This document shows positions 5,089 to 61,386 of a stretch of DNA of 64,000 nucleotides, piece by piece. The translations under genes were made by a program, and so were the position numbers. The DNA lies in assembly GCF_006345805.1 (NCBI RefSeq), contig NC_043010.1, positions 68,014,001-68,078,000 of the forward strand, in the 5' to 3' direction. The DNA comes from Octopus sinensis. Its lineage: Eukaryota. Position 1 is the first letter of the stretch, and each line of letters opens with the position of its first letter. Under the pieces are notes generated by a model. The model had not been told where the DNA came from. It saw only the letters and a program-made list of their open reading frames with translations, and did no database searches.

Positions 5089-5205
5089 TGTTTTCTAAAT
5101 ATTCTCTTTGTTTCATTTTAGGTAAGTGCTCCCGTTTAGAAATATCTGGAAAGTTTTCTCTACTCAGGTGTTCATAGAAACTAGTTTACTCTGGATCAGG
5201 TACGT
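5089..5205 (+). other. Candidate recursive splice site (AG|GTAAGT at 5121/5122) with 78-nt RS-exon-like segment 5122-5199
   Basis: 'ttttctaaatattctctttgtttcattttAG|GTAAGT', downstream donor 'cag|GTACGT' at 5199/5200, and stops in all three frames (5123, 5137, 5175). Confidence 0.5.
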
Positions 5206-5689
5206 GTCACTTTAACTGCAAATGAAATATTTCTGCTTACCCATATTGTCAAGGCTGGTACTAGAAACCGAGGTATTAATGTTGTTTTGATTTAGTCCCA
5301 AGTCAGCCCTGATTAACCCTCCCAGACCTGGGCCCCTGTTTCTGACTTTGTCCTCCACCTGGTCTCCTGAGCAAAAAAGAAAAAAAGTTGTATATACAGC
5401 TTGAGTAATAAGTGCAGGCAAATTAATGGACAGAATCATGAATAAATTCTGGAGAGGAGTAGTAGTAATAATAAATAAGGGTTTAAAATTCTTTTCAAGG
5501 GTAGCAGTTTTGGAGGAGGGGCTGAACCAATTACATCGGTCCCAGTGCTCAACTGGTACTTATTTTGTCAACCCCGAAATGATGAAAAGCAAAATCGACC
5601 TCAGCAGAATTTGAACTCAGAATGAAGCTTTGGGTGAAATACTGTTAAGCATTTCGTCCAGCATGCTGATGAGTCTGCCAGCTCACCAC

Positions 5690-6017
5690 CTTAATAATAA
5701 TAATAATAATAATTAATAAATAATAATTAATAAATAATAATAATAATTAATAAATAATAAATAATAATAATAAATAATAATAATAATAATTAATAATAAT
5801 AAATAATAATAATTAATAATAATAAATAATAATAATTAATAATAATAATTAATAATAATAAATAATAATAATTAATAATAATAAATAATAATAAATAATA
5901 ATAATAATAATAATATTAATATTAATAAATAATAATAATTATAATTAATAAATAATAATTATAATTAATAAATAATAAATAATAATAATAATAAATAATA
6001 ATAATTAATAATAATAA
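5690..6017. repeat. Long degenerate (AAT)n tract with no G or C
   Basis: Read directly; follows a SINE B copy (about 5465-5690). Confidence 0.95.
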
Positions 6018-6431
6018 GAAGACAACTACTGTAGTTGTCCATCCAAATTGCTACTTTTCTCATCTCGTTCACCTGTCTGATTGTCTAAATCACTAGGAAT
6101 CCATACCTGCTATACCAGGAACCGGGAACATGGTGTGATAGTGTTCTATCTGTAACTATGCCATCCTTTTGTCCAGTGGAGACCAACCTTTTATGCATCT
6201 TGTAGCTGAAACATGAGACCAGTCTGTGAAGCAATGCACTCACAGCTGAGTGCTTGAGTGTCACTATGGTGCTTCAAACATTAAGTGTCACTGCATGTTT
6301 GAAGCTCCAGGATGATACACAAGCACTCGACTATGAGTGTATTGCGTCTTGTGGCAGAAACAGCTGTAAGTTAATGCAGTTCATAACATGAGTTGTTTAT
6401 CCCTTTTTCATCCAAATTTTTTGATGATGAC

Positions 6432-6830
6432 TGTGTGTGTGTGAATGGGTGCATATATGTGTGTGTGCATACGTGTATGTACATGAGCATGTATGTACAT
6501 GAGCATGTATGTATGCATGTGTATGCATGTGTGTGTGCATGTCTATGCACATGTGTGTATGCACACTGCATGTATGTACGTGTGTGTATGCATGTATGTA
6601 TGCATGTGTGTATGTATGCTGCATGTATGCACGCACGTTTGCGTGTATGTATGTGTGTGTATGTCTGTGTATGTACATGAGTGTGTAATGCATGCATGCA
6701 CATATGTGCATGTGTATATGTACGTGTCAATCCAATTTGATGTGTATATGTGTCCCTCACCACCGTAGTGCAATGCCTGCAGCTTATTATACATACATAT
6801 GTATGTATGCATATGTTTATGCACACACAC
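6432..6830. repeat. Degenerate (TG)n/(TATG)n microsatellite
   Basis: Read directly; rich in CATG/TGCA variants. Confidence 0.9.
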
Positions 6831-6876
6831 ACACTTTTAGATAGTTTTGTAATCTTTTTCTTTTCCCTGTCTCTGC

Positions 6877-7185
6877 CTTGAAAGAGCTGTTCTTCACTCC
6901 TGCTCCAGAGCGTCGGCTGCGGGGTCACTCCGAAAAGCTCTATCTGTGACGATTTCATCTCAGTCGAAGGAGAGAGGCTTTCTCCGTCCGGGTTGCGGAT
7001 CCATGGAATAAGCTGCCGGACGAGATAGTGAAGATGCCGACGACCGCTCGTTTCAAAGTCTCTCTTGACCAGAATTGGCCTGAACTCTTTGCATGAACAC
7101 CCTCCCTGTACATAACTCCATGTCCCCCTACATGGCCTTGCTTTTTGCTTTTTGAGCCAAAAAATTAACCTAACTTAACTTAACT
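6877..7185 (+). mobile_element. CR1-clade LINE, 5'-truncated 3' end with (CTTAA)n-like tail
   Basis: Translates KELFFTPAPERRLRGHSEKLYL*RFHLSRRREAFSVRVADPWNKLPDEIVKMPTTARFKVSLDQNWPELFA*, the CR1-type ORF2 C-terminus (RGH..KL...F..RV...WN.LP...FK..LD). Ends 'ttaacctaacttaacttaact'. Confidence 0.85.
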
Positions 7186-7358
7186 CTACAGCAAAGTGTT
7201 TGGAGCAGAATCCATACTGCAGAACATAACATAACTGTATCTACCAGAAGTCTGGTGCCAGCTTCTGCCTGGGGCCAGCTCCTGTCAAACCGTCCCACCC
7301 ATGCCAGCATGAAAAGGCAGCCGTTAAACGATGATGATATCTGTTTGTTGATCTCATG

Positions 7359-7390
<32 letters not shown>

Positions 7391-7769
7391 CAAACAAAAG
7401 TTTATTTCAATTATAAAGTCTGCCATCTTCAGCCAATTTGAATTTTTATTTCCTTTGTTATTTTGTTTTCTTCTTTTTCTGGTTTTTCTATTGTTCACAC
7501 CTCCTTCAATATCAGTTGCTACATCCTTCTTTATCCAGTCTTGTCAGCGCTGGTATACACCCATTTCTGCAAGCCAACATAAGCTGGCAACTCCACCACC
7601 ACCGCCACCACCACCACCGCCACCACCCCACACTGCTTCCCTCACAGCTACTCCCCACCACCCATCTTTCAGCCCAGCAGGCCACCATCTTTGTTCCTTG
7701 TATCTCTTCTATCTGTGTAACCTATGACTTAAATCTTACCTTTTAGCAACCTGCTGACTCTTGTAATCA

Positions 7770-8250
7770 GCTTTGTCTGTCTGCCTGCCTGTGTGTCTGT
7801 CTATGTCTGACACTCTCTCTCTGTATTGTCTGTCTATGTCTCTGTCTGTATGTCTGTCTGTCTCTCTCTCTGTATGTATGTATGTATGTATGTATGTATG
7901 TATGTATGTATGTATGTATGTCTGTCTCTCTCTCTGTATGTATGTCTGTCTCTCTCTCTGTATGTATGTCTGTCTCTCTCTGTGTATGTATGTCTGTCTC
8001 TCTCTGTGTATATATGTCTCTCTCTCTCTCTGTATGTCTTTCTCTCTCTATGTATGTCTCTCTCTCTATGTCTCTCTCTCTATCCATCTCTGTCTGCCTC
8101 TCTCTCTTTGTCTGTCTCTCTTTGTCTGTCTCTCTCTGTGTCTCTTTGTCTGTACCTCTGCCTTTCTCTCTCTCTCTCTCTCTTGTCTGTCTGTCTCTCT
8201 CTGTCTCTCTCTCACTCTCTCCCCTCCTTGTCTCTCTCTCTCTTACATAC
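7770..8250. repeat. Compound (CT)n/(TCTG)n/(TATG)n microsatellite
   Basis: Read directly. Confidence 0.95.
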
Positions 8251-9551
8251 ACAGTCAGCATCCAATCTCTCTCATCACTCATCTCAGTTCTCTTGGGTGT
8301 GGGTGTGTATGTATAGGTCTCACTTTGTTACATTTCACTTACAACTTACATTCAGTTCAATTTCCTGTAGAGGTCTTTGTGCATTTTCTTTTATTATCTG
8401 TTTTTACCATGGTGTGCCTCTATGAAAGACAACCTGACTCATAGAACGCACCCCTTCCCCAACAAGCCAATACAATACCCCCTTCTTACCAACACCATCT
8501 GGCCCACTTTCAAATATTATATTTATCTTCTCTGCCTCTACTGCTGCAACAACAGTCCCACAACCCCATCCTTACTGGATGTAATGGCACATGGCTTAAT
8601 GATTAAGTGTGTTGGCCCTATCATGTGGTCATGGGTTCTTGAGCAAGGCATTTCATTTCACAACACTCCAGTCTACTCAGCTGTAAACAACTACCAGCTG
8701 AGTGTTGGTTGCTGGCCTCTCTCCTATCGGCTGCCTGTCATATTCTCAAGGATATCCGACTTGGTCAAGGATTAGAGGACCCCCCCCCCCACCAGCATTC
8801 TGAGATGGGTGTGTACATGGATTTTCAATTACTTGTGACCTCTGAAACGATAAACATTTGATGAAAGCATGCGTACTACCAAATCACAATCGTAGTCTTG
8901 GCTGTTGCCGGCACTTGTGAAATCATAACCATGGCCATTGCTGGTAGCATGATCTTCAAATGTTGGGCCTCATGGAGGTGATGGCAAGTGACTGAAACCT
9001 TGGAGATACACTGCTCTTGAGAAGACTCGTCAAAGCTAAATGAAATTGTAGTCAAGGCTGTTGCTGGTGTCCTGTAAATGGCACCTGTGCTGGTGGTACA
9101 CAAAAGGCATCCCTTAATCTTGCACTCTTGGAGTGGTTGGCGTTAGGATGGGCATCCAGCTGTAGAAACCATGCCAAATGAGACTGGAACCTGGGGCAGC
9201 TCTCTGCTATACCAGTTCCAGTCAAACTGTCTTACCCATGCCAACATGGAAAGTGGATGCTAAATGATGATGGTGTTGGCTATGTTTTATGAAATGGGTA
9301 TGTGTGTTAATAAAGGTTTTAGGGATAGTGGAGGGCAAAATTTGTAAGGGTAGACAACACTTTGATGTCTTTATCTTTCACCTTTTGCTTGTTTCAGTCA
9401 TTGGATTATAGATTTGAGTTGAATGGATTGATGCCAGTACTTATTTTTGTTACAGTCCAGTTCTTGTTCTGTCAATCTCTTTTGTCAAACCACTTAGTCA
9501 TGGGGATGTAAACAAACCAACACCGGTTGTCAAATGGTGTGTGACTGCGAA

Positions 9552-9714
9552 ACACACACACACTCACACACACATACTCACTCACACACTCTCACACACA
9601 CACACCACACACACACACCACACACACACACATACTCACACACACATACTCACACACACATACTCACACACACATACTCACACACACACACACTCACACA
9701 CATACTCACACACA

Positions 9715-9745
<31 letters not shown>

Positions 9746-9887
9746 CACACACACACACACACATACTCACACACACATTACTCACACACACATTACTCAC
9801 ACACACATACTCACACACACACACACTCACACACATACTCACACACACTCGTACACACACACACACACAACACACACACACACGCAT
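9552..9887. repeat. Expanded (CA)n tract inside a minus-strand SINE A
   Basis: SINE A 3'-half motifs lie to the left (about 9385-9545) and head motifs 'cactcacaaggcc' to the right (about 10090-10215). Confidence 0.9.
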
Positions 9888-10943
9888 GCACAGTTGCTTT
9901 TCTCTCTGTTGCTGTATCTGTCTCTGTCTCTCTCTTTCTCCCCAAACTTTCCTCTCTCAAGTTGGAGGGCTGCACCAGGCTCTGCTCATCTGTTTTGGTA
10001 TGGTTTCTATGGCTGGGTGCCCTTCCTAGCCCTATTCATTTTACAGAGGGTATCGGGTACTTTTTATGTGACACTGGCTTGTTTACAGAATCACTCACAA
10101 GGCCTTGATCAGCTTAGGGCTCAAGTAAAAAAACACTTGCTTAAGATGCCACTCAGTAGGGACCAAACTGGAACTCATGATGTCGGGAAGCAAGCTTCTT
10201 ACCACACAGCCATGCGTATGTTTTTACACATATACACATGTTTGGATAAGTTTTGTTTATTGTTCCTTATTCATGTTTACATAAGACCATGACAACTTCT
10301 GGTGGTCGGTGATTTTGTTGTTTATGTATGAAAGATTTTCTTTTTTTTGGTTTTGTTTTGTGGGTGGGTCATTGAAGGGAGAAGCTAAATCTACTACCTC
10401 CCTCCCTCCCTTTTATTTGGAATCCCTACCACTCCTTTTCCATGCTCTCCTTTCAACCAGTCAAATATTTATTGATATGAATACACGTCAACACTTGTCT
10501 AATTTAAATAAACTCTTTCGCTACCTTAATCCCAGATTGCATGAATGAAAAACAGAGTGATGATGATTAAGTGATGATTAGATGTCCCTAATTATCAAGA
10601 TTTAAACTCTTATCTCTCTCTCCCTTCCTTCCCCCCCCCCTTACATGAATTTTTTATAAATAAAAATCTTAAAAAATAAACTCCTACCATCTTAAAATAC
10701 TGCAAAGTGATGATGGTTGTAATTAGAAATGAGAGGAGGTTTGCTGTAATCTTTGTGTAAATATAGTGTGTGTGTGTGTGTGTCTGTCTGTCTGTGTGTG
10801 TGTTCTTCCCTTTTCATTCTCTCCTTATCTCTTCTTCATCTTCCTATCTTTTCTCATTTTTCATTCCTGTGATGAGGAGTGTTGTTCTGTGAAGGATGTT
10901 TGTTAGTTGCTTTTCTCTCTCTGTCTGTTGCTGTGTCTGTCTG

Positions 10944-10976
<33 letters not shown>

Positions 10977-11689
10977 TCTCCCACCTCCTCCTCTGTACTT
11001 CAGATGTGAGCCGAGGCTGAGGCTGCTAATTCCAGAAGTCCCTAACCACATAAATAAGCACCATGCTGCCAACACATTGAATGCAGTTTCGTCTGATTTC
11101 ATCATCTTCATCAGCATCATCATCATTTTAACGTCCACTTTTGCATGCTTGCATGGGTTGGATGGAGTTTGAGACAGAATCTCTGTTCTTAGATGTCCTT
11201 CCTGTCACCGACCCTTACTTGTTTCCAAGCAGGTTAATGTCCTCCATCCCAGCTAGTTACGCATGTCTTCACAGAATATTTCGAATGTATGACACTGCTT
11301 GTAACAATCATTTTACACCTATTACATGATGCCAAGACAAAGGAACACACATGCACGCGCGGTGGACTTCTATCAGTTTCTGGCTACCTTATCCAGTCAC
11401 AAGACTTTATTTTGCCTTTATTCAGTAAAAGGCACTTGCCAAGGGTGCAATAGTTCTGGGACTGAACCCAGAACTATGTGGTTGGGAAGCAAACTTCTTG
11501 CCACGCAGCCACGCTGGCTTTCTGGGCCCAGAGCCTGCAGGGTTTGATTTTGCTATCCATCGTTTGAGGAGTTGCTCAAATAAAAGTTAAATAATGAATC
11601 AAATCTCAACAACTACACCCCTCCCTGGCAATGGATCTTGCGGCCCTGTGCCTGTGTATGAAATAATCATCAGGTATTAGGGCTCTCAG

Positions 11690-12078
11690 TGTGGCTGTGT
11701 GGTAAGTAGCTTGCTTACCAACCACAAGGTTCCGGGTTCAGTCCCACTGCGTGGCACATTGGGCAAGTGTCTTCTACTATAGCCTCAGGCTGACCAAAGC
11801 CTTGTCAGTGGATTTGGTAGACGGAAACTGAAAGAAGCCCGTCGTATATATGTACATATATCTGTGTGTGTGTGTGTTTGTCCCCACAACATTGCTTGAC
11901 AACCGATGCTGGTGTGTTACTTCTCCGTAACTTAGCGGTTCGGCAAAAGAGACCGATAGAATAAGTACTGGGCTTACAAAGAATAAGTCCTGGGGTCGAT
12001 TTGTTTGACTAAAGGTGGTGCTCCAGCGTGACCACCACAGTCGAATGACTGAAACAAGTAAAAGAGAGAGTAAAGAGT
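11690..12078 (+). mobile_element. SINE family A (tRNA head, CORE-like segment, internal microsatellite, TAAAAGAG tail)
   Basis: A box TGGCTGTGTGGTAAG, B box GGTTCAGTCCC, CORE-like 'tgggcaagtgtctt', ending 'gaaacaagtaaaagagagagtaaagag'. Confidence 0.9.
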
Positions 12079-20829: not shown

Positions 20830-21240
20830 CCACTAATCCTGGGAGGGTCATGCGGGTAGAGTCCTTGGGCACGTCTCCTTTAAGGTCCTATTAGACTTTC
20901 CAGCTGGATTTCCAAGTATGATCAACTGGGATTATGGATATTATCCACCCCTCTCTCATTCTTGATCTTCCCCTAGGTCTCCTGCTGGTCAGCTCAGTTT
21001 GAAGTATCTGTCTTGTGAATTCTCTCCCGTGACATTCTAATCATGTCTATAGTGCTCATGTTGTGACCGCTCAATTCAGAGAAATAGTGGCTTGACCTGG
21101 GGAGACTCCCTGATCTCTGAGGTATGCACCTGATATCCTTCGCAAAAAAACCCATTTCAGCTACTTGTATACACAGTTCTACTATTTCAATCATTACCCA
21201 ACCATAGGTAAGGGTAGGTATTGAAACCAAGTTGAAGAAT
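20830..21240 (-). mobile_element. RTE-clade LINE ORF2 C-terminal remnant
   Basis: Track ORF 20994-21230 contains IPTLTYGWVMIE...IQVAEMGFF, like the RTE PTLTYG.E.WVMTE...IQAAEM.FL motif. Downstream TSRRPRGRSR matches the GRRPRGRPR motif. Confidence 0.7.
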
Positions 21241-26715: not shown

Positions 26716-26745
26716 GGATTTATTAATATTATTTATTAATATTAT

Positions 26746-27156
26746 ATTTCTTTACTACCTACAAGGGGCTAAACATAGAGGGGACAAACAAGGACAGACA
26801 AAGGGATTAAGTTGATTACATCAACCCCAGTGCGAAACTGGTACTTTATTTATCGACCTCGAAAGGATGAAAGGCAAAGTCGACCTCGACGGAATTTGAA
26901 CTCAGAACACAACGACAGAGGAAATACCTATTTCTTTATTACCCACAAGGGGCTAAACATAGAGAGGACAATCAAGGACAGACATAGGTATTAAGTCGAT
27001 TCCATCGACCCCAGTGCGTAACTGGTACTTAATTTATCGACCCCGAAAAGATGAAAGGCAAAGTCGACCTCGGCGGAATTTGAACTCAGAACGTAGAGGC
27101 AGACGAAACACCGCTAAGGATTTCGCCCAGTGTGCTAACGTTTCTGCCAGCTCGCC
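26746..27156 (-). mobile_element. SINE B tandem dimer (long-tail form)
   Basis: Two bodies joined at 'gaaatacctatttctttatt' (about 26921-26940), the same junction type as the 58.3-59.2 kb array. Confidence 0.88.
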
Positions 27157-32790: not shown

Positions 32791-33146
32791 GTTCCCCACC
32801 CTCTTGGCTGGACATCTAGTATTGGTTCATTACATCCCTATAACATAGTTGTTAGGCAGAAGAGAACTACAGAATAAAATATATGTTTTCACTGGGGAAA
32901 ACAAAAGCAACTTATCAGATTTTCATTCTAGTGTTGTTATCAGGTCCTCATCAATAAGGACTTCAGAGTTATTGGTCAGATAATTAAGGTTCACCATGGC
33001 TACCCTGCTATTAGATTGAAGTGTGTGGTGTGTGTGTGTGTCTTTGCCTTGACATCACCTGATAGTTGAAAGTGAGTGCTGCTGTCATGCAAGTAGCTGC
33101 TACATTGAACAGAAGGAAGGTTCTGGTGTATATATATATATACACA

Positions 33147-33429
33147 CCAGCGCTCGACCTTTATTCTCTAGAAAAACGCCGCCGCTGTGGTGATCTCATT
33201 CTTGCTCACAACATCATAAGCGGAAAGTGTAACCTCTCGAAAGAGCTGTTCTTTACTTCTGCTCCAGAGCGTCGGATGCGGGGTCACTCCGAAAAGCTCT
33301 ATCTGCGACGATTTCATCTCATTCGAAGGAGAGGGGCTTTCTCCATCCGGGTTGTGGATCCATGGAATCAGCTGCCGGACAAGACAGTGAAGATGCCGAC
33401 AACCGCTCGGTTCAAAGTCTCCCTTGACC
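33147..33429 (+). mobile_element. CR1-clade LINE internal 3' fragment, same family as 6877-7185
   Basis: PALDLYSLEKRRRCGDLILAHNIISGKCNLSKELFFTSAPERRMRGHSEKLYLRRF...WNQLP...FKVSLD, with the L.SLE.RR.RGDLI motif of CR1 ORF2. Truncated at both ends. Confidence 0.88.
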
Positions 33430-33700
33430 GTGTGTTGTGTTCTTCAGCAAGTCACTTCATTTCATGTTGTTCCAGTTCACTCAACCGTAGAAATGAGTTG
33501 CGACATGATTGGTGCCAAGCTGTACTGATGTTTGGCTTTCCCGTGGACAATGTAGGTGGCATGGAGCAGAGAGACTGGTATGCATGGACGACTGTTGGAC
33601 TTCCATAAACAACCTTGCTCAGACTTGTGCTTCTGAGGGTAACTTTCTAGTTGCAATCCCATGGTCATTCATTACTGAAGGAGGTCTTTATCCATTTAAA
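33430..33700 (-). mobile_element. SINE-like repeat family E
   Basis: Reverse of 'tcatgaatgaccatgggattgca...agaaagttaccctc...gcacaagtc...ttggcaccaatc'; homologous to 38905-39112 and 50993-51262. Confidence 0.8.
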
Positions 33701-38686: not shown

Positions 38687-38904
38687 CTCTCTTTGTGATA
38701 GCTTGATCTGCTAATGTTAGTAATCAAATAATTTCCCTCATCAAACGCTACTTTTTCAAAATTATTATTTTCCGAAAAGGAAGCTTGTCATTCATTATAT
38801 GTATAATGTAGTGCAGAGTACACTATGCTTAGAAAAATAGAATGACCAGATGGTCATGGCTGGAAGGCTTTTGATCATGTGTTTTGGAACTAAACTGTAA
38901 TAGG

Positions 38905-39112
38905 GAAAGACCCCCTTTGGTCATGAATGACCATGGGATTGCACCTAGAAAGTTCCCCTTTGAGGCACAAGTCCAGGCAAGATTGTTTATAGAAGACCAG
39001 CAATTGCCCATACATACCAATCTCTCCTCTCCATGCCACTGATGTTGTCCAAGGGAAAGGCAAAGGCTGATACTGCTTGGTACTAATGACGCTGCAACTC
39101 ATTTCTACAGCT
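38905..39112 (+). mobile_element. SINE-like repeat family E fused to a SINE A head fragment
   Basis: 'ggtcatgaatgaccatgggattgcacctagaaagtt...gcaactcatttctacagct' followed directly by 'cacaaggctttggtcagc'. Confidence 0.8.
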
Positions 39113-39614
39113 CACAAGGCTTTGGTCAGCCCAAGGCTATAGCTGAAGACACTTGTCCAAGGTGCCACGCAGTGGGACTGAACCCAGAACCATGTGGTTG
39201 GTAAGCAAGCTACTTACCACACAGCCACTCCTGCGCCTATATATATGTAAGGTAATTTTATTGTGGATTGTTGATATTAATACTTCAAAGTATTAATAAC
39301 CCTGACCTTTGTACTAATTGTCTAGCTTTCAAAAATAGCTCCATTCAACAGTTTGATTACTGTGCATCATCTGGTATATTTTGCATATATAAATTCTTTG
39401 TGTTTTTTTTTTTCTTTTGGGTATTTTTTTTTTGGAAACAACACAAACATTATTTTGGATCCAAGAACCTTTTCTCATGGCTGGATAAGAGCCACAAGGC
39501 AGTCAAAGTTTGGAATTAGGATTTTCCAAGCAGATGAGCTCCATTTACTGATTTGCTAATCAACTCATAGCTAGAACCTTGATAGGTGCTACATATTCTG
39601 AGTCAGAATAAACC

Positions 39615-39848
39615 TATTTCTTTACTACCCACAAGGGGCTACACACAGAGAGGACAAACAAGGACAGACAAACAGATTAAGTCGATTATATCGACCCCAG
39701 TGCGTAACTGGTACTTATTTACTCGACCTCGAAAGGATGAAAGGCAAAGTTGACCTCGGCGGAATTTGAACTCAGAACATAGCGGCAGACAAAATGCCAC
39801 TGAGCATTTCTCCTAGCGTGCTAACATTTCTGCCAGTTTGCCGCCTTT
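39615..39848 (-). mobile_element. SINE B, long-tail form
   Basis: Complete reverse copy from 'cctatttctttactaccc' to 'ttctgccagtttgccgcc'. Confidence 0.88.
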
Positions 39849-43008: not shown

Positions 43009-45330
43009 TCTCTCTATTCCTTTTGTCTTTCTGCTTTTTGCTTTCTACTTCCTGGCTCTTCTCTCTCCCTCCTTTCTATATCTGCTTTCATTTTATTTTT
43101 CCACCCTTCTTCATCTAGGGTTTCCCTTCTACCACTTGCACACCATCTTACAAGCACATTTTTGGTTTGGCGCATTAAGCACATATGGTTTAGCACTTTG
43201 TGTATAGGAAGTGTGCACGTGCGCACACACACACACACACACACACTAGTGTGAACATTCACATGCACGTACTACACGCATACACACCACACATTCTACA
43301 TGCATTCAGATATATCACATACTGGGTGTACATATGTGCACACTATACACATACATACACACCCACAAACATATAATGCACATACATCATGCATACACAA
43401 ATATATCACATAGTGGGTGATATATTGTGGATGTATACATGCATGTGTATAACCACACACACACACACACACGTTTGCATTAATGATTGTGTATAAGCCC
43501 CACACTTTTTGTAAAGTCCCCCCCCCCCGGTAGGGTTGGGGCGGGGCGCTCATTCATACCCCTCCCTTTTTCTCCTGATTTCCCTACTCTCTCTCTCTCT
43601 GTTTCTCCGTTCCTGTCTTTCTCCCACCTTTAGCCCTCTTTGAAGCTCTCTCCTTAATACATATCCTTCCTGCCTTCCTTCCTTTTTCCACCCCCCCCCC
43701 GTTTTCATCGGCTCTATTTCCTTCCGTTGCTGCTGCTGCTGGCCTTTTTTACCATCACCCCTAGGTTTGTCTCCACTGCCACCACTGTCCAATTGTCCTG
43801 CAAGTCAAGGCTGACAAAGAACCTTTACATAGTTGCTGGACCTGCTGAAGATAGTAGCCGAATCTCACTCAAGTCACCTACCAAAAAAAAATGACAGGAT
43901 GGTTATGGTTGGAAGGCTTTTTTTAAAATCATTTATTATTTTTTTTAATCATTTATGTCTGCTCCATCATAGTTCACCCTAGGGGTGGGGAACTACACAG
44001 CAACAATAGCAACAAACATATCACAACTTTTTAGGTCAGTTTCACCATTCCAGATAACCAGGTAATTAATATCCGGAGCAGATGTAAAAAAAAAATCTTA
44101 AAAATATGGCCCTAAATTTAACCCTGGATTACCACAGAATTTTGTAATTCATCCCAGCCAAGTGACCACCACCACTACCACAATGACAACATCATAAATC
44201 AGTGCCAGCCTATTTCCAAACCATCACAAACCTTACTATTTTTTATTGAAGGAACTAAACCAATTATAATGTCTGGTTTGCAGCCCACTCCCTAATGCCC
44301 TTCTTCCTTCCATCCCTGTTGCCTCTATTGTATGACCTAATTCTTTTTTTCCCCCCTTGTTCCTTATCATTTCTATCTTTAGTCTCCCCTAGCTTAACCT
44401 TAGCCCCCTGAAAGAGGAATAACATATCTGATTCTGAATAATGTTTTCTAATATAGATAAGAGCAAAGGCTACAAAATTTCTGAGCAAGGGACAAGGGGA
44501 CAGTTGGTTATATCAGACTTCAGAGCTCTGCTGGTTCTTGATTTCTTTTATCTACTCCCTGGGGAGGTGAGGGGCCAACTCTGGGATCTCAACAGGATTT
44601 GAACACACTCACTCACACACACACCACATTCTCTCTCTCTTTCACACTCTCTCTCTTACATTCTCTCTCTCTCTCACACTCTCTCTTTCTCGCTCTCTCG
44701 CACTCTCTCTCGCACACACTCACATTCTCTCACTCACACTCGCTCTCTCTCACACATACTCGCGCTCTTTCTCTCACACATACACTCGCGCTCTTTCTCT
44801 CACACACATACACTTACGCACTGTCTCACGCTCGCTCACTCACTCACTCACGAGTACAACTTTTTGAAGGAGAGTATAGGTTGATTATATTGATCCGCAG
44901 TATTTCACTGGTCCGTCATCTTACCGATTTTCGAAGTAAAGTTTATCTTGGCAGCATCTAAACCAAACACGGGCAATTGTTTTCGAGAAGTGTGTCACGG
45001 AGACATAACCCTTTCATCAGGTGGGCTGTACTATTAAAAACAAAAAACGGAAGGTAAAGTTTATCTTGGCAGCATTTGAAGGGACGGTATAGGTCAATTA
45101 TATCAAACCAGTATTTGACTGGTACATTTACTGACTCTAGAAGAATTGAAAGTCTGCCCCACGCGGCTGGTTATCATTTCTAACGTTCTAACGTTTCTGT
45201 GGAGAGTGGGAGTGCGTGCAATTAATTTAATTAAACTTACAGTATTTGATTGGTTAGTCTTAATTGAGTAGACCTATTCTGGAAGGCATCCCAGTTGTGT
45301 CCAATGTGTCCTGCCCATTTTAAAGTGGTT

Positions 45331-48779: not shown

Positions 48780-48820
<41 letters not shown>

Positions 48821-48876
48821 GTTATTGGTGAATTGAAGAAATGGAGCTGAACGCAGATTGAACAGAAATCGTTTTA

Positions 48877-48965
48877 TTTCATTCTACACGTGTTTCGAAA
48901 GGCACAAATTACCAAAATCCGATTGAATAATGGGACCATATTGTGTCTTTCTCTTCAGGAAGAAA
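48877..48965 (-). ncRNA. Minimal type I hammerhead ribozyme (mirror copy, left arm)
   Basis: Exact reverse complement of the motif at 49059-49147. Confidence 0.7.
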
Positions 48966-49058
48966 AAAGGAAATCCGCTGGAAAAACAAAAACAGAACAG
49001 AGGCGGAGCAAAAGCAAATCGAACTGTTCTGTTTTTGTTTTTCCAGCGGATTTCCTTT

Positions 49059-49147
49059 TTTCTTCCTGAAGAGAAAGACACAATATGGTCCCATTATTCA
49101 ATCGGATTTTGGTAATTTGTGCCTTTCGAAACACGTGTAGAATGAAA
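49059..49147 (+). ncRNA. Minimal type I hammerhead ribozyme (right arm)
   Basis: CTGAAGA 49066-49072. Stem II GAAAG/CTTTC (49073-77/49123-27) extended by CACAA/TTGTG. GAAA 49128-31. Palindromic stem III ACACGTGT. GUA triplet 49137-39. Stem I TTTCTTC/GAA(T)GAAA, 7 bp with one bulge. Confidence 0.72.
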
Positions 49148-49358
49148 TAAAACGATTTCTGTTCAATCTGCGTTCAGCTCCATTTCTTCAATTCACCAAT
49201 AACGTTTTAATTTCAATTATCCGCACCAACGCACGGTTGCAACGCCAGATGGTTGTACCTCCAACCGTGCTGTTTACTGCTGTGATTTTTGCTACTAAGG
49301 TATCGGTTAAACTTTTGATTAATCTACTACAAGATTATTCATCTTTCTATTTCACATA

Positions 49359-50645: not shown

Positions 50646-50992
50646 GGATTTTCAGTTTGTATGGAATGTGTTGTGGATTTAGCCTATACGGTTTTCCATT
50701 TCCCTCACTTGACATTCGGTTGGCCAGATTTTGCGCATGAAGCGATGAGGTAGTCGCTTGGCTTTCTTCAATCTCTTTCTATCATTAATCTACTTTCTAT
50801 CATCACCAATCGGGTAATGTGGCCGGTAGGACTCTCATTTGCATTATTTTTCTCCAGAGCAGAGGGTTCCCGACCATCGGGACACTGACCAGTTGGCACC
50901 TGGCCGCTCAGAAAGAATAACTTTTATTTCTATGTTATTGACTATCACAGTTTGCTGGTTGTTTTTGCATTATATTTGTGTTAAAGAGTAAA

Positions 50993-51262
50993 GATAAAGG
51001 ACCTCCTTTCGGTCATGAATGACCATGGGATTGCACCTGGAAAGTTACCCTCCGAGGCACAAGTCCGGGCAAGTTTGTTTATGGAAGACCAGCAGTTGCC
51101 CATGCACACCAGCCTCCCGTCTCTACACCACCGATGTTATCCAAAGGAAAGGCAAAGGCCGATACAGCTTGGCACCAGTGATATCGCAACTCGTTCCTAC
51201 GGCTGAGGGAACTGGAGCAATGTGAAATAAAGTGTCTTGCTCAAGAACATAACGCACAGAAA
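50993..51262 (+). mobile_element. SINE-like repeat family E, least decayed copy
   Basis: 'gataaaggacctcctttcggtcatgaatgacc...ggaactggagcaatgtgaaataaagtgtcttgctcaagaac'. Confidence 0.85.
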
Positions 51263-51588: not shown

Positions 51589-53072
51589 CAAAGGCGAGCA
51601 CCTTTAATCGAAAAGTAAACTTCGTTAACCGTTAATCCGTTAACCAAAAAGTGAACTTCGATAACCGTTAATCAGTTAAATATTAAAAAACGTAACGGAA
51701 ATTATCGATAAACCGTTAACGTTAATTTTTTAAATTTCGTTTTGTATTTGGTTTGCAAGATTCTTTATGTGAATTCGTGTGCTGAAGCATATTTTATTGT
51801 GTCTGAGGAGAGTGATTCTCTTTCAGTGCCTCACCTGTTCGATTTCCACTCATTTACTTATTTATTTTTTCTAAAATTTTCGTTGCGTCTTGCAACCTTT
51901 TCAGTAGTCGTTGACTTTGTTAATTTTTCTTATAGAAAAAAAAAATCAGTTTTTGGTCTAAAACCACCGAAAAGCACAATTAAAAAGTGCTAAAGTCAGT
52001 CTTTTCTGACCCTTTTAAGGGCTTCAGAACCAAAAAAAAAAAAAAAAACTATCGTTTTTTTCTTTTTTGGTTTACAGTTAAAAAGGGCTAATTTCATACT
52101 TTTGACCCTTTCTTAGATTTTAAAAGCTTTTAGGGCCAGGAAAAGGTTAAAAAAAAAAAACTCAGATGAAACACAATATTAGTATTAAACTAAAAAAGTT
52201 TATTGAGGTGGCCGTAAAATAATTAAAAAAATGAAAAACACGTTATATACATAATTTAATTTTCCCTCGTCTCGTTCTCCATTCTGTTCATGAGATACTT
52301 TTTGCCCTTCATGAAAATTAGCATGTCAAAGTTTTCATTAGACAGAGATGAACTCTTGGCCCTCAAGATGTCCTTGCTCATAGAGAACAAACACTTCACT
52401 GCAGCACTGGAGGGGGTGGCTGTGTTAAACTTGATGAACAAGTCCACCAACACATGCCCACCCAAGAAGGCATCATCATCTGTCTTTGGAGAAGGCATCC
52501 TCAGCAAGTCGTTGGAGTTGGTCTCCAACCAGGTCTTGACAAAATGCTGGGCCTTGTCCTTGAGTGACCTGTAGCTCACTTTGGGCTGGGTGACACTACT
52601 GAAGAAGTCCTCCTCCTCCTTGTTGTTGCTGCCTCCACTGTTACTGATCCCTTCGTCAGACTGCTACCTCATGGTTTCCTCGACCTTACCCGCCCATGCT
52701 TTTCACCACCATGGCGACCTTGGTGTTGTCATACTTATCCAACCAGATGAGGCGAAACCTGGGGGGGGGGGCGGGAAGGCCGCAGTCAGCTGGTATTCCT
52801 CATCCTCCAGAAAGGTCTGAAACTTTTTGTCGACGCCTGTCAAAAGTGCGTCGACCAAGAGGCTGCAGTAGACGAAGCTCTTGGACTTCAAGTCTTTGAG
52901 CCAAAAGGTCGTCTCTGCAACTTGAACTCAAGCTGACTTGAGTTAGCGGAAGTTAAATGTAACGGAAGTTAATTAATCCGATAATGATTTCCGAAGTTAA
53001 CTTAGAAGTTAAATCGTTAACAAAAATGTTAATTGCGTTAATTAACGATTAACGGTTTGGTGCCCATACCTG
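51589..53072 (-). mobile_element. Internally deleted hAT DNA transposon, about 1.5 kb
   Basis: Imperfect TIRs CAAAGGCGAGCACC / CAGGTATGGGCACC (8/14), arrays of GTTAA/TTAAC subterminal motifs at both ends, and a transposase C-terminal remnant inside. No clear TSD. Confidence 0.75.
52256..52925 (-). pseudogene. hAT transposase C-terminal remnant including the dimerisation domain
   Basis: LFIKFNTATPSSAAVKCLFSMSKDILRAKSSSLSNENFDMLIFMK matches the hAT PSSA.VERLFS....L...R..LS..NF..L.F motif. Upstream AETTFWLKDLKSKSFVYCSLLVDALLTGVDKKFQTFLEDEEYQLTAAF. Frameshift at the G-run 52761-52771, further lesions, and no N-terminal or catalytic part. Confidence 0.85.
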
Positions 53073-54532: not shown

Positions 54533-54700
54533 ATATTGTTATATTTCGAAATGGTCATTTTGCAAGTTTAGCCAATAAAAACACACGCACTATATATTTA
54601 TTTTTTTTTACACATTAATCTTAATCTTATTTCGGCCAGAGTTCTTTCGTCACACTCCTGGCTAAACTTGCAAAATGACCATTCCGAAATATAACAATAT
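54533..54700. repeat. 42-bp inverted repeat (41/42) with an 84-nt spacer, MITE-like
   Basis: atattgttatatttcgaaatggtcattttgcaagtttagcca (54533-74) versus tggctaaacttgcaaaatgaccattccgaaatataacaatat (54659-700). Confidence 0.85.
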
Positions 54701-55019
54701 CTATTTCAACACACGACTTCACATAAAAAAATCTTGCACAACAAATATATAAACGTACTAATATAATATAGTATAATATAAAATGATATTATATAATATA
54801 TGGCAATCTTTCGGGGAAAGTTTATGACGTCATGAGTGAGTGAATGACTGTCTTTTTGCTTGACAGAGTCGAACAGTCAAGCACACACACATTCGCACTC
54901 ATGGCTGACGTCATGAACTAATACCGAAACACTGCATACAATAATACTATATATTTCAGAGATGAACTTACCGAGCAAGTGATTTGATCTGAGAAACTTT
55001 AGTATTATTATTATTATTA

Positions 55020-55382
55020 TTATCTCTGCCTTAGCGAAGGCGGAGGTATTGTTTTCAGTTGTGTTTGTTTGTTTCTTGGTTCGCGGACAAGATATCTCAA
55101 GAACCACTGGATGGATTCGAATGAAACTTTTAAGGGTGTTTGGCCCCGTGACTGGCACGGGATCGATCCGGTACCGGTCAAGGATTCTGGATAATTTTTC
55201 CTGTTTTTTTTTTTTTTTTCACTAAATTTTTGAGAGCGGTCGGATTCATTTTCAGTATTCTCGTTTGTGAGAGCAGTCGAGTTTATTTAAGATATTCTCA
55301 TTTTAAAGATCATCTCTGGTTAATCATTGAGAGGACGTTGGTGTTGCCTTGGTGGAGGTTTGCGCGCTCGGAGTGCTCTTGT
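55020..55382 (+). mobile_element. Helentron-associated (HINE/DINE-1-like) non-autonomous element
   Basis: 5' hairpin TCTGCCTT-agcg-AAGGCGGA (55025-44), then 'ggtattgttttc...gtttgtttg...atatctcaagaaccactggatggatt...atgaaactt'; 3' 'ccttggtggaggtttgcgcgctcggagtgct'. Sits in (ATT)n. Family assignment is from memory. Confidence 0.55.
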
Positions 55383-55708
55383 TGTTGTTATTATTCGACT
55401 TTGCCTTTCATCTTTCCGGGGGTTGATAAATTAAGTACCAGTAAAGCACTGGGGTTGATCTAATCGACTAGTCCCCTCCCCCAAAATTTCAGGCCTTGTG
55501 CCTATAGTAGAAAGGATTATTATCATTGTTTCAAATTTTGGCAAAAAGCTAGGAATTTCAGCGGGAGCAGGTTAGTCAATTACATCGCCCCCCCCCCACA
55601 ATACTTGACCGTTGCTTTATTTTACCGATTTCAAAAGGATGAAGGATGAAGCTGATCTTGTCGGAATTTGAACCCAGGACGCGCTTAACGACTCTGACAG
55701 CTTCCCGC

Positions 55709-55759
<51 letters not shown>

Positions 55760-56124
55760 ATGTCTGTATGTCTGTCTGTATGTCTGTCTGTATGTCTGTA
55801 TGTCTGTATGTCTGTATGTCTGTCTGTATGTCTGTATGTATGTATGTATCTATCTATCTATCTATCTATCTATCGGCGCTGAAACGATTGTGAAGTTAAC
55901 TGTACAACTACGTTGTTCCGGGTTCAATCTCAGTTTGCAGACTCTTAGGTATTGGAAATAGAATTTAATTAGCGTTAACAAGGAATTTTGTGAAACCGAA
56001 CAAACACCGACAAAAATCAAATTGATTTAACGTTTAATGGAATTTGAATGTCGGAGTTGTTTCCCTTCTTTTGCCGAAAAATAAAATTATCGTTGTTAAT
56101 GTACAATATGCACACACACACGTG

Positions 56125-56548
56125 TAAGGCGGTGAGATGGCAGAAACGTTAGCGCGTCGGGCGAAATGCTTAATAATACTTCCTCTATCTTTATGTTCTG
56201 AGTTCAAATTCCACCGAGGTCGACTTTGCCTTTCACCCTTTCGGGATCGATAAATTAGGTACCAGTTACGCACTGGAGTCGATGTAATCGGCTTAATCCC
56301 TTTGTCTGTTCGTGTTTGTATCCTCTATGTTTAGTCCCTTGTGGGTAATAAAGAAATAAGAAACGTTAGCAGCCGGGCGAAATGCTTACTGGTGTTTCGT
56401 CTGCCGTTACGTTCTGAGTTCAAATTCCGTCGAGGTCGACTTCGCCTTTCATCCTTTCGGTGTGGATAGATTAAGTGCCAGTTGCGTACTGGGGTCGGTC
56501 GAATCGACTGGCCCCTCCCCACAAATTTCGGGCCTTGTACCTAGAACA
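56125..56548 (+). mobile_element. Two head-to-tail SINE B copies (long tail then short tail)
   Basis: 'ggcggtgagatggcagaaacgttag...taaagaaataag|aaacgttagc...gggccttgtacctagaacagaaaag'. Confidence 0.88.
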
Positions 56549-57154
56549 GAAAAGAATATACGCACACTTACACCACTGACACACATCACATATATTCAGT
56601 TCTATCTCACTTTACGAGACCCCAGGTGTGCGAGTTTTATATTATATTTTTCAAGCACAAGATCCAAGTTTTGAACCAAGTGCAAAAGACTCTACTACCA
56701 TAACAAATGCTTCTGCGTGTAAAAAGAAATCTACAAGCCCGTCTACGAGTGCTTGTGAATTGGCGATCGTGTCTATAAGTGATGGTGTGCTCTAAGTCTA
56801 GAGCGAGTAAATCTATACTATCTGAAAGGCATTTGGAAAAAAATTTAATTGAAGTATAACCATTTTTTTTTTCTTCTGAAAATTACGAGGAAGCAAAGTC
56901 CGCTCGTGGGGCCCTTTTGTGTATGTATGCCAGTGTTTCTAGTATAGCATATCTTTCAATGTATCGAACGATGTTCTGCGGTCTATTTTTGACTTTCATT
57001 ATTGGGGAATCCCTCTCTATTCTTGTGTGAATAGTCTTCTAATGCGCTATGTGTAAAGGGAGGCAACTCTTCTTTTGCTATTGGTTTAAAATTTGGGACA
57101 AGTTTTGGATGAATTGCTCAAATGCTTTGAACGTCAATTTTCTATTAAATTACA

Positions 57155-57589
57155 TACTCTTTTACTTGTTTTCAGTCATTTGACTGCGGCCATGCTGGAG
57201 CACCGCCTTTAGTCGAGCAAATCGACCCCGGGACTTATTCTTTGTAAGCCCAGTACTTATTCTATCTGTCTCTTTTGCCGAACCGCTAAGTAACGGGGAC
57301 GTAAACACACCAGCATCGGTTGTCAAGTGATGTTGCAGGGCAAAAATACAGACACACACACACAATGCTAGGGGGACAAACACACACACACACAATGCTA
57401 GGGGGACAAACACACACACACACCACACACACCACACACACACACACACACATACACACACACATGTATATATACGACGGGCTTCTTTCAGTTTCCGTCT
57501 ACCAAATCCACTCACAAGGCATTGGTCGGCCCGGGACTATAGCAGAAGACACTTGCCCATGATGCCACGCAGTGGGACTGAACCCGGAA
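57155..57589 (-). mobile_element. SINE A, head truncated, with a small internal duplication
   Basis: Reverse copy; 'cacaatgctagggggacaaac' occurs twice. Confidence 0.9.
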
Positions 57590-58279
57590 AAAAAAAACAA
57601 AAAAACTATCGTAAAACTTTTACCTTTTCGTCCGCTGCAGGAACATGAACTGTAGCGATTCGTTATAGGGACTTTTCCTGGGGACAAAATGTTTTCTCGT
57701 TCCTCGGACACCTTAATGCTGAATAATTTCAAAAGATTTTTGGTTCCGAAGGACTGTTTGGGAATCGTTAGAATTCACGGGTCTTTAAACCTAATGCAAA
57801 TTTATTTATTTTTTTTTACTCGTTTTAGTAATTTGGTTGCGGTCATGCTGGAGCACTGCATTGAAGGGTTTAGTCGAACAAATCGGTCCCAGTACTTCGT
57901 TGGTGTCGCTTTACCGAACTGCTAATGTTACAGGGACGTAAGCATACCAACACCGGTTATCCTGCGGAGGTGGGCCCTGTTTCCCCCCGTCCCGTTTCCT
58001 TCTACCAAATCCATTCACAAGGCTTTGGTCGATCTGGAGCTATTAGTAGAAGACACTTGCTCAAGGTGTCACATAGTGGGTCTGAAACCCTTTATTAGCA
58101 ATTTCCTTTTGTATCGAAGTAGATCATACATTGTGAAGGCGCAAGGCTTAGTGGTTAGGGTATCGCAGTCACGATCGCATGATCATAGTTTCGCTTCCCG
58201 GATCAGGCGAGATCTTGAGCAAAACACTTAATTTCACTTTCTTCCAGTCGACTCAGCTGTACATGAGTAACGTTGCGAC

Positions 58280-59164
58280 GGGCGAAATGCGTAGCCGTAT
58301 ATCGTCTGTCTATACGTTCTGAGTTCAAATTCCGCCGAGTCCGACTTTGACTTTCATCCTTTCGGGGTCAATTAAATAAGTACCAGTTACGCCCTGGGGT
58401 CGATATAATCGACGTAATCCGTTTATCTGTCCTTGTTTGTCCCCTCTGTGTTTAGTCCCTTGTGGGTATTAAAGAAATAGGTATTTCGTCTGTCTATACG
58501 TTCTGAGTTCAAATTCCGCCGAGGTCGACTTTGCTTTTTATCCTTTCGGGGTCAATTAAATAAGTACCAGTTACGCACTGGGGTCGATATAATCGACGTA
58601 ATCCGTTTGTCTGTCCTTGTTTGTCCCCTCTGTGTTTAGTCCCTTGTGGGTAGTAAAGAAATAGGTATTTCGTCTGTCGTTACGTTGTGAGTTCAAATTC
58701 CGCCGAGGTCGACTTTGCTTTTCATCCTTTCGGGGTCAATTAAATAAGTACCAGTTACGCCCTGGGGTCGATATAATCGACGTAATCCGTTTGTCTATCC
58801 TTGTTTGTCCCTCCTCTGTGTTTAGCCCCTTGTGGGTAGTAAAGAAATAGGTATTTCGTCTGTCTATACGTTCTGAGTTCAAATTCCGCCGAGGTCGACT
58901 TTGCTTTTCATCCTTTCGGGGTCAATTAAATAAGTACCAGTTACGCACTGGGGTCGATATAATCGACGTAATCCGTTTGTCTGTCCTTGTTTGTCCCCCC
59001 TCTGTGTTTAGCCCCTTGTGGGTAGTAAAGAAATAGGTATTTCGTCTGTCTATACGTTCTGAGTTCAAATTCCGCCGAGGTCGACTTTGTCTGTGGTTGA
59101 TATAATCGACGTAATCCGTTTGTCCCCTCTGTGTTCAGCCCCTTGTGGGTAGTAAAGAAATAGG
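58280..59164 (+). repeat. Five-unit tandem array of the SINE B body (184-186 bp)
   Basis: 'cgtctgtc' anchors at 58303, 58487, 58671, 58857, 59043; the last unit is internally deleted. Confidence 0.93.
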
Positions 59165-59435
59165 TTACATATACTGCAAATAAAGTGCATCAGGGGAGGC
59201 AATACATGTAAAGAAATTACTACGGAGTGAATTCCCTTGATGACTTATGCGTGTACGGGGAGTGGAATTGAAATTGGTAGTTTTTAGGTGTCAGAATAAA
59301 TGAAATGAAACGAAACAAGACATTCTGTTGCTGATTATGTCTGGTTTACCTCAGTCTTTAGCTGTAAATCGTTTTAAGGTTTTATCGCGTTGCTAGAGTT
59401 GCAGAAAGAAATAGTTATCGACAGAAAACACACTG

Positions 59436-59796
59436 GAGAGTGGCTGTGTGGTAAGTAGCTTGCTTACCAACCACATGGTTTTAGGTTCAGTCCCACTGCG
59501 TGGCACCTTAGGCAAGTGTCTTCTTCTATAGCCTCGCACCGACCAAAGCCTTGTGAGTGGATTTGGTAGACGGAAACTGAAAGAAGCCCGTGTGTGTGTG
59601 TTTGTGTCTCTGTGTTTGTCCCGCCAACATCGTTTGACAACCGATGGTGGTGTGTTTACTTCCCCGTAACTTAGCGATTCGGCAAAAGAAACCGATAGAA
59701 TAAGTGCTAGGTTTACTAAGAATAAGTCCTGGGGTCGATTTGCTCGACTAAAGGCAGTGCTCCAGCATGGCCGCAGTCAAATGACTGAAACAAGTA
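59436..59796 (+). mobile_element. SINE A, full length
   Basis: A and B boxes, CORE-like segment and 3' end 'aatgactgaaacaagta'. Confidence 0.9.
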
Positions 59797-59836
59797 TGCA
59801 GGGCTTTTGTCGTGCAGAAGTGATGTTTGTACACTG

Positions 59837-60013
59837 CAGTGCTCCACAACCCGTTTCCCACTTGCAGCACACTTACATCCTTTTCACAACTTGGCGGCAT
59901 ACCTGAACTAAAAATATAACTTAAAGTGTAGGGAAAAAAAATTATGTTCAAGTTACACTAGCATCGTCTCGTGACACACCAGTGTGCCGCAGCGTACCGG
60001 TTGTGGAGCACTG
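59837..60013. mobile_element. hAT-superfamily MITE, 177 bp
   Basis: Perfect 15-bp TIRs CAGTGCTCCACAACC / GGTTGTGGAGCACTG; TSD GTACACTG / GTTTACTG (6/8). Confidence 0.85.
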
Positions 60014-60102
60014 GTTTACTGAGATGGGTAATTACTTTCTCTTTTATTATCTTACACGTTTCAGCTCTAAGGTTGTGGCCAGGCTGGAGCTTGCCTATTA
60101 AG

Positions 60103-60222
60103 TTTACTTCACACACAATTTTTTTAGACATGTGTTGACTGTTACTTCACACACAATTTTTTTAAACATGTGTTGACTGTTACTTCACACACAATTTTTT
60201 TAAACAAGTGTTGACTGTTATT
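60103..60222. repeat. 38-bp tandem repeat, three units
   Basis: 'ttacttcacacacaattttttt..acatgtgttgactg' at 60104, 60142, 60180. Confidence 0.92.
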
Positions 60223-60546
60223 TCCAGCACGTTGAAGATTATCATATTAATGGAGTTTCTAATTATAAATTGTGGTGTTAGTGTTAATAATTCGTTGGTC
60301 TTCATCTAGTAATCTTAGGATCAAAGGCGTTCCAACTGTGACCTTCATATGTATTCACACAACATGAAATGTATCGTTCCGTTGTTTAAGATCTGGTTTG
60401 AGATGAATTTCTATCAATTAGTTAATTATATATTTTACATTCTTCCAACAACAGAAGTACGTTTGATTACTCTGATGAATGAACTTGCTTAAGCTGTTTG
60501 ATTAACATTATTTTCCTAACTTGAAACAATTGTTAGCATTTTGTTA

Positions 60547-60766
60547 CCCTTTCGTTACCAACCTGGCTGAAACTGGTTCTGGCTCTGAGTACAAATGTCT
60601 TGTTTGCATAAGTTTTGAATTAAAATCTTCCACCAAACCTTAGTCACAATTTATGTTCCTAACACTAGTTGAAGGATATCTAAGGTATTTAACTAAATTC
60701 TTTGTTATATTTAAAGTAATTGAAAGAAATACAGAACATCTCAAAATAAATACAGTAACGAAAGGG
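60547..60766. mobile_element. piggyBac-like MITE (type 1), opposite orientation to the 22-kb copies
   Basis: CCCTTTCGTTAC ... GTAACGAAAGGG|TTAA, a perfect 12-bp TIR. Confidence 0.85.
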
Positions 60767-61218
60767 TTAAAATATATAATAGAGAAACAATTCTTAACCC
60801 TTTTGATACTAACCTGGTTGAAACCAGCTCTGGCGTATTCTACTGCTAAACTGGATATAAACAGAAGCAATACTGGTCTTCAAGCAGTAGTCACACACAC
60901 ACACACACACACACACAAAATACATTGGATTTCCACACAGTTTCCATCTACCAAATTCACTCACAAGTCATTGGTTGGCCCAGGGTTAGAGTAGAAAACA
61001 TTTACCTGTTTATTGTCTGGTTGCATTTTTCTATTGATGTGGTGAAAGTTGTTCCAGGTATCAAGGGTTCAAACACTGGATTTTGAAAAAGTTTTTTTTT
61101 TGCAGAATTGTTTTTGTTTAGTACTTTTATTGAAAATGTTTGAAGTCTAATTCTCACAGCGTGTAATGTTAGGTACTCTTAATCATTATTTTGTTATTCT
61201 CATTTACATTATTTCCTA

Positions 61219-61386
61219 CTGACTAACCTCTTTCTTTTTTCCTTTTTTCTATTTTCAGGTAAGTCTAAGGTACTTGTATTGCAAGCTCCTTTTATCTGGG
61301 AAGCCATTGTCATGATTAAAAGCTTTGAGCTAAAATAAGTGAAGAAATGCAAACATCTGGCAGCCGTCTTGATGTATGAGGTAAGT
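61219..61386 (+). other. Candidate recursive splice site (CAG|GTAAGT at 61258/61259) with 122-nt RS-exon-like segment 61259-61380
   Basis: Branch point 'ctgACTAAC' (61219-61227), near-pure pyrimidine tract 61227-61256, CAG|GTAAGT, second donor 'gag|GTAAGT' at 61380/61381, and stops in all three frames (61260, 61313, 61336). Confidence 0.65.

Follow-up and report, generated by a model that had tools for sequence, protein, structure and literature searches.

A 64,000-nucleotide stretch of the Octopus sinensis genome (contig NC_043010.1, positions 68,014,001 to 68,078,000 of the forward strand; hereafter the window) contains two sites, 56 kb apart on the same strand of this repeat-rich octopus DNA, at which a strong 3′ splice site is immediately followed by a perfect 5′ splice site (donor), with a second donor a short distance downstream. 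This is the architecture of the recursive splice sites, or ratchet points, that are accompanied by a recursive splicing exon (RS-exon) in flies and vertebrates (Joseph and Lai, PMC8605326; Zhang et al., PMC6110456). On balance, we lean towards the interpretation that the two octopus sites are recursion-competent RS-exon units of the Drosophila/vertebrate type, situated in one or more long plus-strand introns of an octopus transcript, and that their cryptic exons would most likely be skipped. An earlier note, made from the letters of the window, had pointed to junctions 5121/5122 and 61258/61259 as strong acceptors directly adjoining perfect donors, to second donors 78 and 122 nucleotides (nt) downstream, to intervening segments closed in all frames and to the likeness with fly and vertebrate recursive splice sites; all of these points are borne out by reading of the sequence and by the published descriptions.

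The window has three copies of the octamer AGGTAAGT (at 5120, 61257 and 61379), all on the plus strand and none on the minus strand, and two of them are placed behind a pyrimidine tract. The first of these, candidate ratchet point 1 (5120–5127, plus strand), reads TAG/GTAAGT, where the slash marks the junction 5121/5122, in the context ATATTCTCTTTGTTTCATTT-TAG/GTAAGT. The second, candidate ratchet point 2 (61257–61264, plus strand; junction 61258/61259), reads CAG/GTAAGT in the context TTTTTCCTTTTTTCTATTTT-CAG/GTAAGT and, as a donor, matches nine of the nine positions of MAG/GTRAGT, the consensus by which donors were scored. Abutting 3′ and 5′ splice sites (AG/GT) within the extended consensus (Y)nNYAG/GTRAGT are thus found at both junctions. 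The third copy is the downstream donor of site 2, in agreement with the earlier note, which had seen no other on this strand.

Upstream of the junctions, both sites carry the elements of an acceptor. At site 2, the pyrimidine tract (61228–61256, plus strand) is 29 nt long, includes a single purine and no AG, and has pyrimidines at 19 of its last 20 positions; at site 1, the tract (5100–5119, plus strand) has pyrimidines at 16 of 20 positions and begins shortly downstream of a TA/TG microsatellite (about 5017–5088). Both tracts have T at −5 and at −6, a feature beyond those listed in the earlier note. This TT is present in 99.5% of Drosophila ratchet points versus 44% of ordinary fly introns (Duff et al., bioRxiv 10.1101/006163). 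The branch-point motifs TACTGAC and CTAAC lie at 61217–61227 (plus strand) of site 2, with putative branch-point adenosines at 61222 and 61226, 36 and 32 nt before the G of the 3′ splice site; the CTGAC and CTAAC positions thus fall inside the zone 20–50 nt upstream in which branch-point motifs are enriched at human recursive splice sites (PMC6110456). At site 1, a branch-point-like CTAAA (5095–5099, plus strand) is an approximate match, agreeing with YTNAY at four of five positions, and its putative adenosine (5098) lies 23 nt before the G of the 3′ splice site, with no AG between them. The zone upstream of the junction is free of AG at both sites. Like the TT, the branch-point-like motifs and these AG-free zones go beyond the features of the earlier note.

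Downstream, each site is closed by a second donor that would delimit a cryptic RS-exon. Putative RS-exon 1 (5122–5199, plus strand; 78 nt) ends at CAG/GTACGT (donor 5200–5205, plus strand) and putative RS-exon 2 (61259–61380, plus strand; 122 nt) ends at GAG/GTAAGT (donor 61381–61386, plus strand), each donor matching eight of nine positions. All three frames are interrupted by stop codons in both segments, which are embedded in islands of sequence not repeated elsewhere in the window (about 5120–5440 and about 61020–61500). A second downstream donor of this kind is part of the RS-exon architecture in flies and in human (PMC8605326, PMC6110456); the cryptic RS-exons of flies are poorly conserved and out of frame (PMC8605326), and 68% of human RS-exons carry a premature stop (PMC6110456), so that in their non-coding, stop-containing content both octopus segments resemble known RS-exons. 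Since the exonic positions −3 to −1 of a reconstituted donor would come from the upstream exon, the intronic halves are compared here: at site 1 the GTAAGT of the ratchet point is stronger than the GTACGT of the RS-exon donor, which is weaker at +4, and at site 2 both are GTAAGT. This relation between the intronic halves is in line with the donor-competition model, whereby the donor of the ratchet point keeps the cryptic exon from being included (PMC8605326, PMC6110456). Tandem duplication of the first donor of site 2 was considered as a source of the second and rejected, because the two have unrelated flanks.

The same boundaries could also belong to ordinary exons of a plus-strand long non-coding RNA (lncRNA) or an untranslated region (UTR), or to poison cassette exons, which would be included by way of the acceptor at 5121 with the donor at 5200 and the acceptor at 61258 with the donor at 61381 and would leave the GTAAGT at their 5′ ends unused. 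Both segments have good acceptors and donors as bounds, at 78 and 122 nt they are of normal exon length, and closed frames suit non-coding exons; moreover, expressed RS-exons exist in flies (PMC8605326), and most human cassette exons that start with GT are not recursive (PMC6110456). On the other hand, the first six bases of an ordinary exon are unselected, and two perfect donors at this position would be a coincidence of about 10−7 (a probability of about 3.6 × 10−4 for each). Ligation of such an exon to the upstream exon would in addition recreate a consensus donor, which would then need active repression, and no protein, annotated or not, matches the two segments in a search among 5.8 billion proteins. 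With all frames closed, a length of 122 nt that is not a multiple of three and not one protein match in that search, the segments do not have the properties of ordinary cassette or coding exons. We therefore regard inclusion as ordinary exons as an unlikely, though reasonable, explanation of the two segments.

The combination of these elements exceeds what the composition of the window would produce. When an acceptor-like site is defined as a YAG behind 20 nt of at least 80% pyrimidines, the window contains 62 such sites on the plus strand and 34 on the minus strand, and the probability of GTAAGT after an AG is about 3.6 × 10−4; for the two strands together this gives an expectation of 0.034 composite sites versus two seen (Poisson probability about 6 × 10−4, or about 6 × 10−3 at a pyrimidine threshold of 70%), both on the plus strand and none on the minus strand. 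An empirical control, in which the real sequence was kept, gave a similar picture in that, of the 4096 hexamers, just 10 are found behind at least two of the 96 acceptor-like sites, and several of the most frequent ones (for example CCCCTT, seven times) are probably repeat-derived. Donors that match at least eight of nine positions number 11 per strand in the 64 kb, yet four of the 11 on the plus strand belong to the two sites, and a donor of this quality lies 30–130 nt downstream of only 1.7% of positions. Under the assumption of independent features, the whole architecture would arise with a probability of roughly 10−6 to 10−7 per window, a figure that leaves out the TT, the branch points and the AG-free zones. 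The density of composite sites in the window, 3.1 per 100 kb on the plus strand and 0 on the minus strand, may be set beside a background of 0.07–0.12 per 100 kb in the antisense of long introns of 12 of 13 animal genomes (0 in the mosquito) and beside the sense-strand value of 2.2 per 100 kb in fly introns over 50 kb (PMC2773006). An accidental origin of the two-site architecture thus appears very unlikely. Because of this, and because a perfect donor starts both segments, the main doubt concerns transcription of the plus strand and use of the sites, and less the role that they would have once used.

The base composition of the strands bears on the first of these points. On the plus strand T exceeds A by 5.2% (5.8% in unique sequence), with a positive excess in all eight 8-kb bins, and G exceeds C by only 1–1.6%, variably along the window. 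Transcribed regions of eukaryotes generally have more T than A on their coding strand (PMC5786239, citing Touchon et al., 2004), so that the skew points to the plus strand as the sense strand over the whole window; its uniformity would fit a strand-asymmetric process, such as transcription, along all 64 kb. Counts of polyadenylation signals and of bare donor hexamers in the window gave no informative strand bias.

Several observations weigh against our interpretation, and most of them speak for chance, that is, for splice-like motifs that arose in DNA which is untranscribed, or transcribed from the minus strand only, and that are never used. The count of the bare octamer is ordinary, at 3 observed versus 2.6 in dinucleotide shuffles of both strands, and AG/GT after an acceptor-like tract shows no strand bias, with five cases on the plus strand and four on the minus strand. 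The sites were selected post hoc by a reader scanning for patterns, the thresholds were picked after the sites had been seen, and many windows may have been screened beforehand; in a gigabase genome, two composite sites in one window arise at roughly 6 × 10−4 to 6 × 10−3 per window. Skews of about 4% also exist apart from annotated genes: at another O. sinensis locus (L001; CM016864.1), a 10-kb flank that lacks annotated genes shows an excess of T over A of +4.4%, and the one annotated gene of that locus has −3.4%. Since a similar skew is present in this gene-free flank, the skew of the window is only suggestive of a plus sense strand. Site 1, furthermore, is the weaker of the two sites, because of its 16/20 tract, its four-of-five branch-point motif and its position next to a microsatellite. 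Finally, 56 kb is long for one recursive segment, the fly median being 16 kb, and the candidates for intermediate ratchet points are poor. With two weaker composite sites on the plus strand (TAG/GTAAGG at 21206 and GAG/GTGAGG at 44565), the segments would shorten to 16, 23 and 17 kb; these two sites were rejected in this role and are probably non-functional, as they lack TT at −5/−6 and have a weaker donor and, at 44565 in particular, a poor acceptor. The spacing is nevertheless inside the range of fly recursive segments, which extends from 2.6 to 63.6 kb (bioRxiv 10.1101/006163). What chance would have to produce, however, is two composite sites on one strand, each with an eight-of-nine donor within 130 nt, for which the joint probability is the 10−6 to 10−7 per window given above, together with the clustering at these two sites of four of the 11 strong plus-strand donors of 64 kb. 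Chance motifs in DNA that is silent on the plus strand are accordingly, in our judgement, rather unlikely to account for the sites.

The two sites do not appear to descend from a common element. Each occupies sequence that has no second copy in the window, with repeat copies on either side, and neither is in a transposable element. Their regions align with each other over a 28-nt motif only, and because the likeness is confined to this motif, the idea that the sites are copies of one repeat was rejected. A different origin could still be envisaged for them, namely in transposable element families that are present as single copies and carry splice-like cassettes, in intronic decoys for U1 small nuclear RNA (snRNA) that protect against premature polyadenylation, or in minus-strand fragments of the U1 5′ end. 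The reverse complement of AGGTAAGT equals the 5′ end of U1 snRNA (ACTTACCT), and this identity speaks for the last two of these origins. Tandem or interspersed repeats make up 46% of the window, and the comparison was made with one other octopus locus only, so that families present once in the window would escape it. However, neither island recurs within the window or at the other locus, the two sites are alike in motif only, and a scan of the whole window at the Rfam gathering thresholds returned no match to U1 or to any other RNA family. A U1 decoy, moreover, has no need of an upstream pyrimidine tract, an AG or a branch point. Origins of this kind are decidedly improbable as an explanation of the two sites.

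The recursive splicing interpretation places the sites in an intron, and the content of the window is in keeping with this. The earlier note had seen no recognisable coding exon, and the searches lead to the same conclusion. Neither the open reading frames (ORFs) that span the two sites (431 amino acids) nor the ORFs of at least 62 amino acids in unique sequence (4966 amino acids) have a homologue in the collection of 5.8 billion proteins searched above. Ten long ORFs of the window gave no Pfam match above threshold, and none of ten window ORFs was present in an exact look-up in a protein collection. A listing of splice-bounded open segments in unique sequence yielded 31 short candidates, none of them convincing. 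ARAGORN found no tRNA in the whole window, and exact-pattern scans of metagenome contigs with each site returned no match.

The only protein similarity of the window is a decayed C-terminal fragment of a hAT-type transposase on the minus strand (52259–52927), which is 55–58% identical to proteins of a hagfish and of two ENA contigs and 50% identical to O. sinensis LOC118763785. One of these relatives passes the Pfam cut-off for Dimer_Tnp_hAT; the copy in the window has no Pfam match. A protein search with the hAT-like and LINE-tail (long interspersed nuclear element) ORFs gave five hits, which served to fix the taxon. Locus L001, which encodes this O. sinensis protein, is unrelated to the window, yet the two have many interspersed repeats in common, at 80–95.5% identity; this assigns the window to Octopus or a near relative, in agreement with the cephalopod of the earlier note. 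Tandem repeats account for 19% of the window, the G+C content of which is 40%. Among the interspersed repeats is what was judged by eye to be the 3′ end of a LINE, with the ORF motif RVVDPWNQLP, at 33066–33698 (plus strand), 38898–39112 (minus strand) and 50989–51257 (minus strand); its copies are 79–81% identical within the window and 84–90% identical to the copy at L001, and the ORF has no Pfam match. An inverted repeat (48815–49000 and 49024–49209), with arms of 186 nt that are 100% complementary and separated by a 23-nt spacer, adjoins a TA microsatellite and could be either a very young foldback element, similar to a miniature inverted-repeat transposable element (MITE), or an assembly artefact. 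A unit of 184 nt is repeated in tandem at 58297–59089 (4.3 copies, 95% match) and is scattered in both orientations at 26745–27092, 56131–56358, 4693–4945 and 39612–39847. A segment of it resembles a tRNA by eye (GAGTTCAAATTCCGCCGAGGTCGAC), although ARAGORN found no tRNA in the window; the unit looks like a short interspersed nuclear element (SINE), for which a tandem arrangement is unusual. A G-rich unit of 157 nt at 2654–3286 (4.0 copies, 97% match) is the source of a local GC skew of +0.42.

If the two sites are used as recursive splice sites, a feasible model may be as follows. The host would be one long intron, or successive long introns, of a plus-strand transcript. The upstream exon would be joined to the acceptor at 5121, which would be recognised with the help of exon definition over the 78-nt cryptic exon as far as the donor at 5200; this ligation would place GTAAGT directly behind the upstream exon and so recreate a consensus donor. 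The recreated donor, matching or out-competing the donor of the RS-exon, would splice onward, and the cryptic exon would be skipped. The same would be repeated at 61258/61259 with the 122-nt cryptic exon, and the intron would thus be removed in segments of up to about 56 kb. The earlier note had proposed a giant plus-strand intron removed stepwise, and every prediction of this proposal that could be checked in the letters of the window held; transcription of the plus strand across the window, use of the sites, skipping rather than inclusion of the cryptic exons and stepwise removal itself are inferences.

Recursive splicing has been shown experimentally in Drosophila and vertebrates only, and its occurrence in other insects and in sea urchin is a prediction from motifs. 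The earlier note knew of no description in cephalopods, and full-text searches agree with it, in that no paper was found to tie recursive splicing to cephalopods, octopus or molluscs, the co-occurrences of the terms being incidental or confined to reference lists. In insects and sea urchin, long introns show a 4- to 22-fold sense-strand enrichment of composite sites (PMC2773006), which makes the mechanism plausible outside flies. Cephalopod genomes are very large and laden with repeats. It is tempting to speculate that octopuses clear their giant introns by zero-nucleotide recursive splicing of the Drosophila style, by way of cryptic RS-exons and at a site density like that of the fly, which would be the first such case in Mollusca or Lophotrochozoa and would make the mechanism appear as ancestral to bilaterians with long introns and not as a speciality of insects and vertebrates; we put this wider proposal forward tentatively and with less than even confidence. 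If the sites are used, the mechanism would reach a third major branch of the bilaterians, with two concrete and testable coordinates. Whether the octopus follows the fly regime, with strong sense enrichment, or the vertebrate regime, with almost none, matters for understanding how giant introns came to be spliced accurately. Confirmation would establish a known mechanism in a new clade, not a new mechanism.

Recursive splice sites with RS-exons are reported, by Sibley and colleagues in 2015, to occur in long vertebrate neuronal genes. The octopus sites share with the vertebrate sites (Zhang et al., PMC6110456) the AGGT core, the strong acceptor, the branch-point motif 20–50 nt upstream and the downstream donor that delimits an RS-exon of about 100 nt with premature stops, as well as the competition that would be expected between the reconstituted donor and that of the RS-exon. 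By contrast, vertebrate composite sites show little or no sense enrichment (a ratio of 0.9–1.5; PMC2773006) and few of them are highly used, whereas the octopus window holds two perfect sites on the same strand within 64 kb. In the kind of evidence, the present analysis resembles the survey of Shepard et al. (2009; PMC2773006), which likewise relied on motif and strand bias, and the control-strand background of about 0.1 per 100 kb agrees between the two. The survey differs in that it took in sea urchin, fly, mosquito, bee and beetle, and no mollusc or other lophotrochozoan, and in that it was based on annotated introns of known strand.

Among known systems, Drosophila ratchet points with cryptic RS-exons, such as those of Ubx, kuz, Bx and luna (Duff et al., bioRxiv 10.1101/006163; Joseph and Lai, PMC8605326; Pai et al., PMC6110457), offer a further comparison. 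Unlike these, the octopus sites belong to a cephalopod mollusc; their putative RS-exons, of 78 and 122 nt, exceed the roughly 50 nt that is usual in flies, and their spacing of 56 kb is near the upper limit of fly segment lengths. Fly sites, moreover, are defined by ultraconservation and by RNA intermediates, whereas the octopus sites are candidates identified by their sequence. In the remaining respects the two systems correspond. Both have (Y)n-YAG/GTAAGT with TT at −5/−6; both have a short cryptic exon downstream that is non-coding, shut in all frames and closed by a second donor; in both, the ratchet-point donor is at least as strong as that of the RS-exon, judged in the octopus by the intronic halves; the octopus spacing remains within the fly segment range; and the density of composite sites in the octopus window, 3.1 per 100 kb, is similar to the 2.2 per 100 kb of fly introns over 50 kb.

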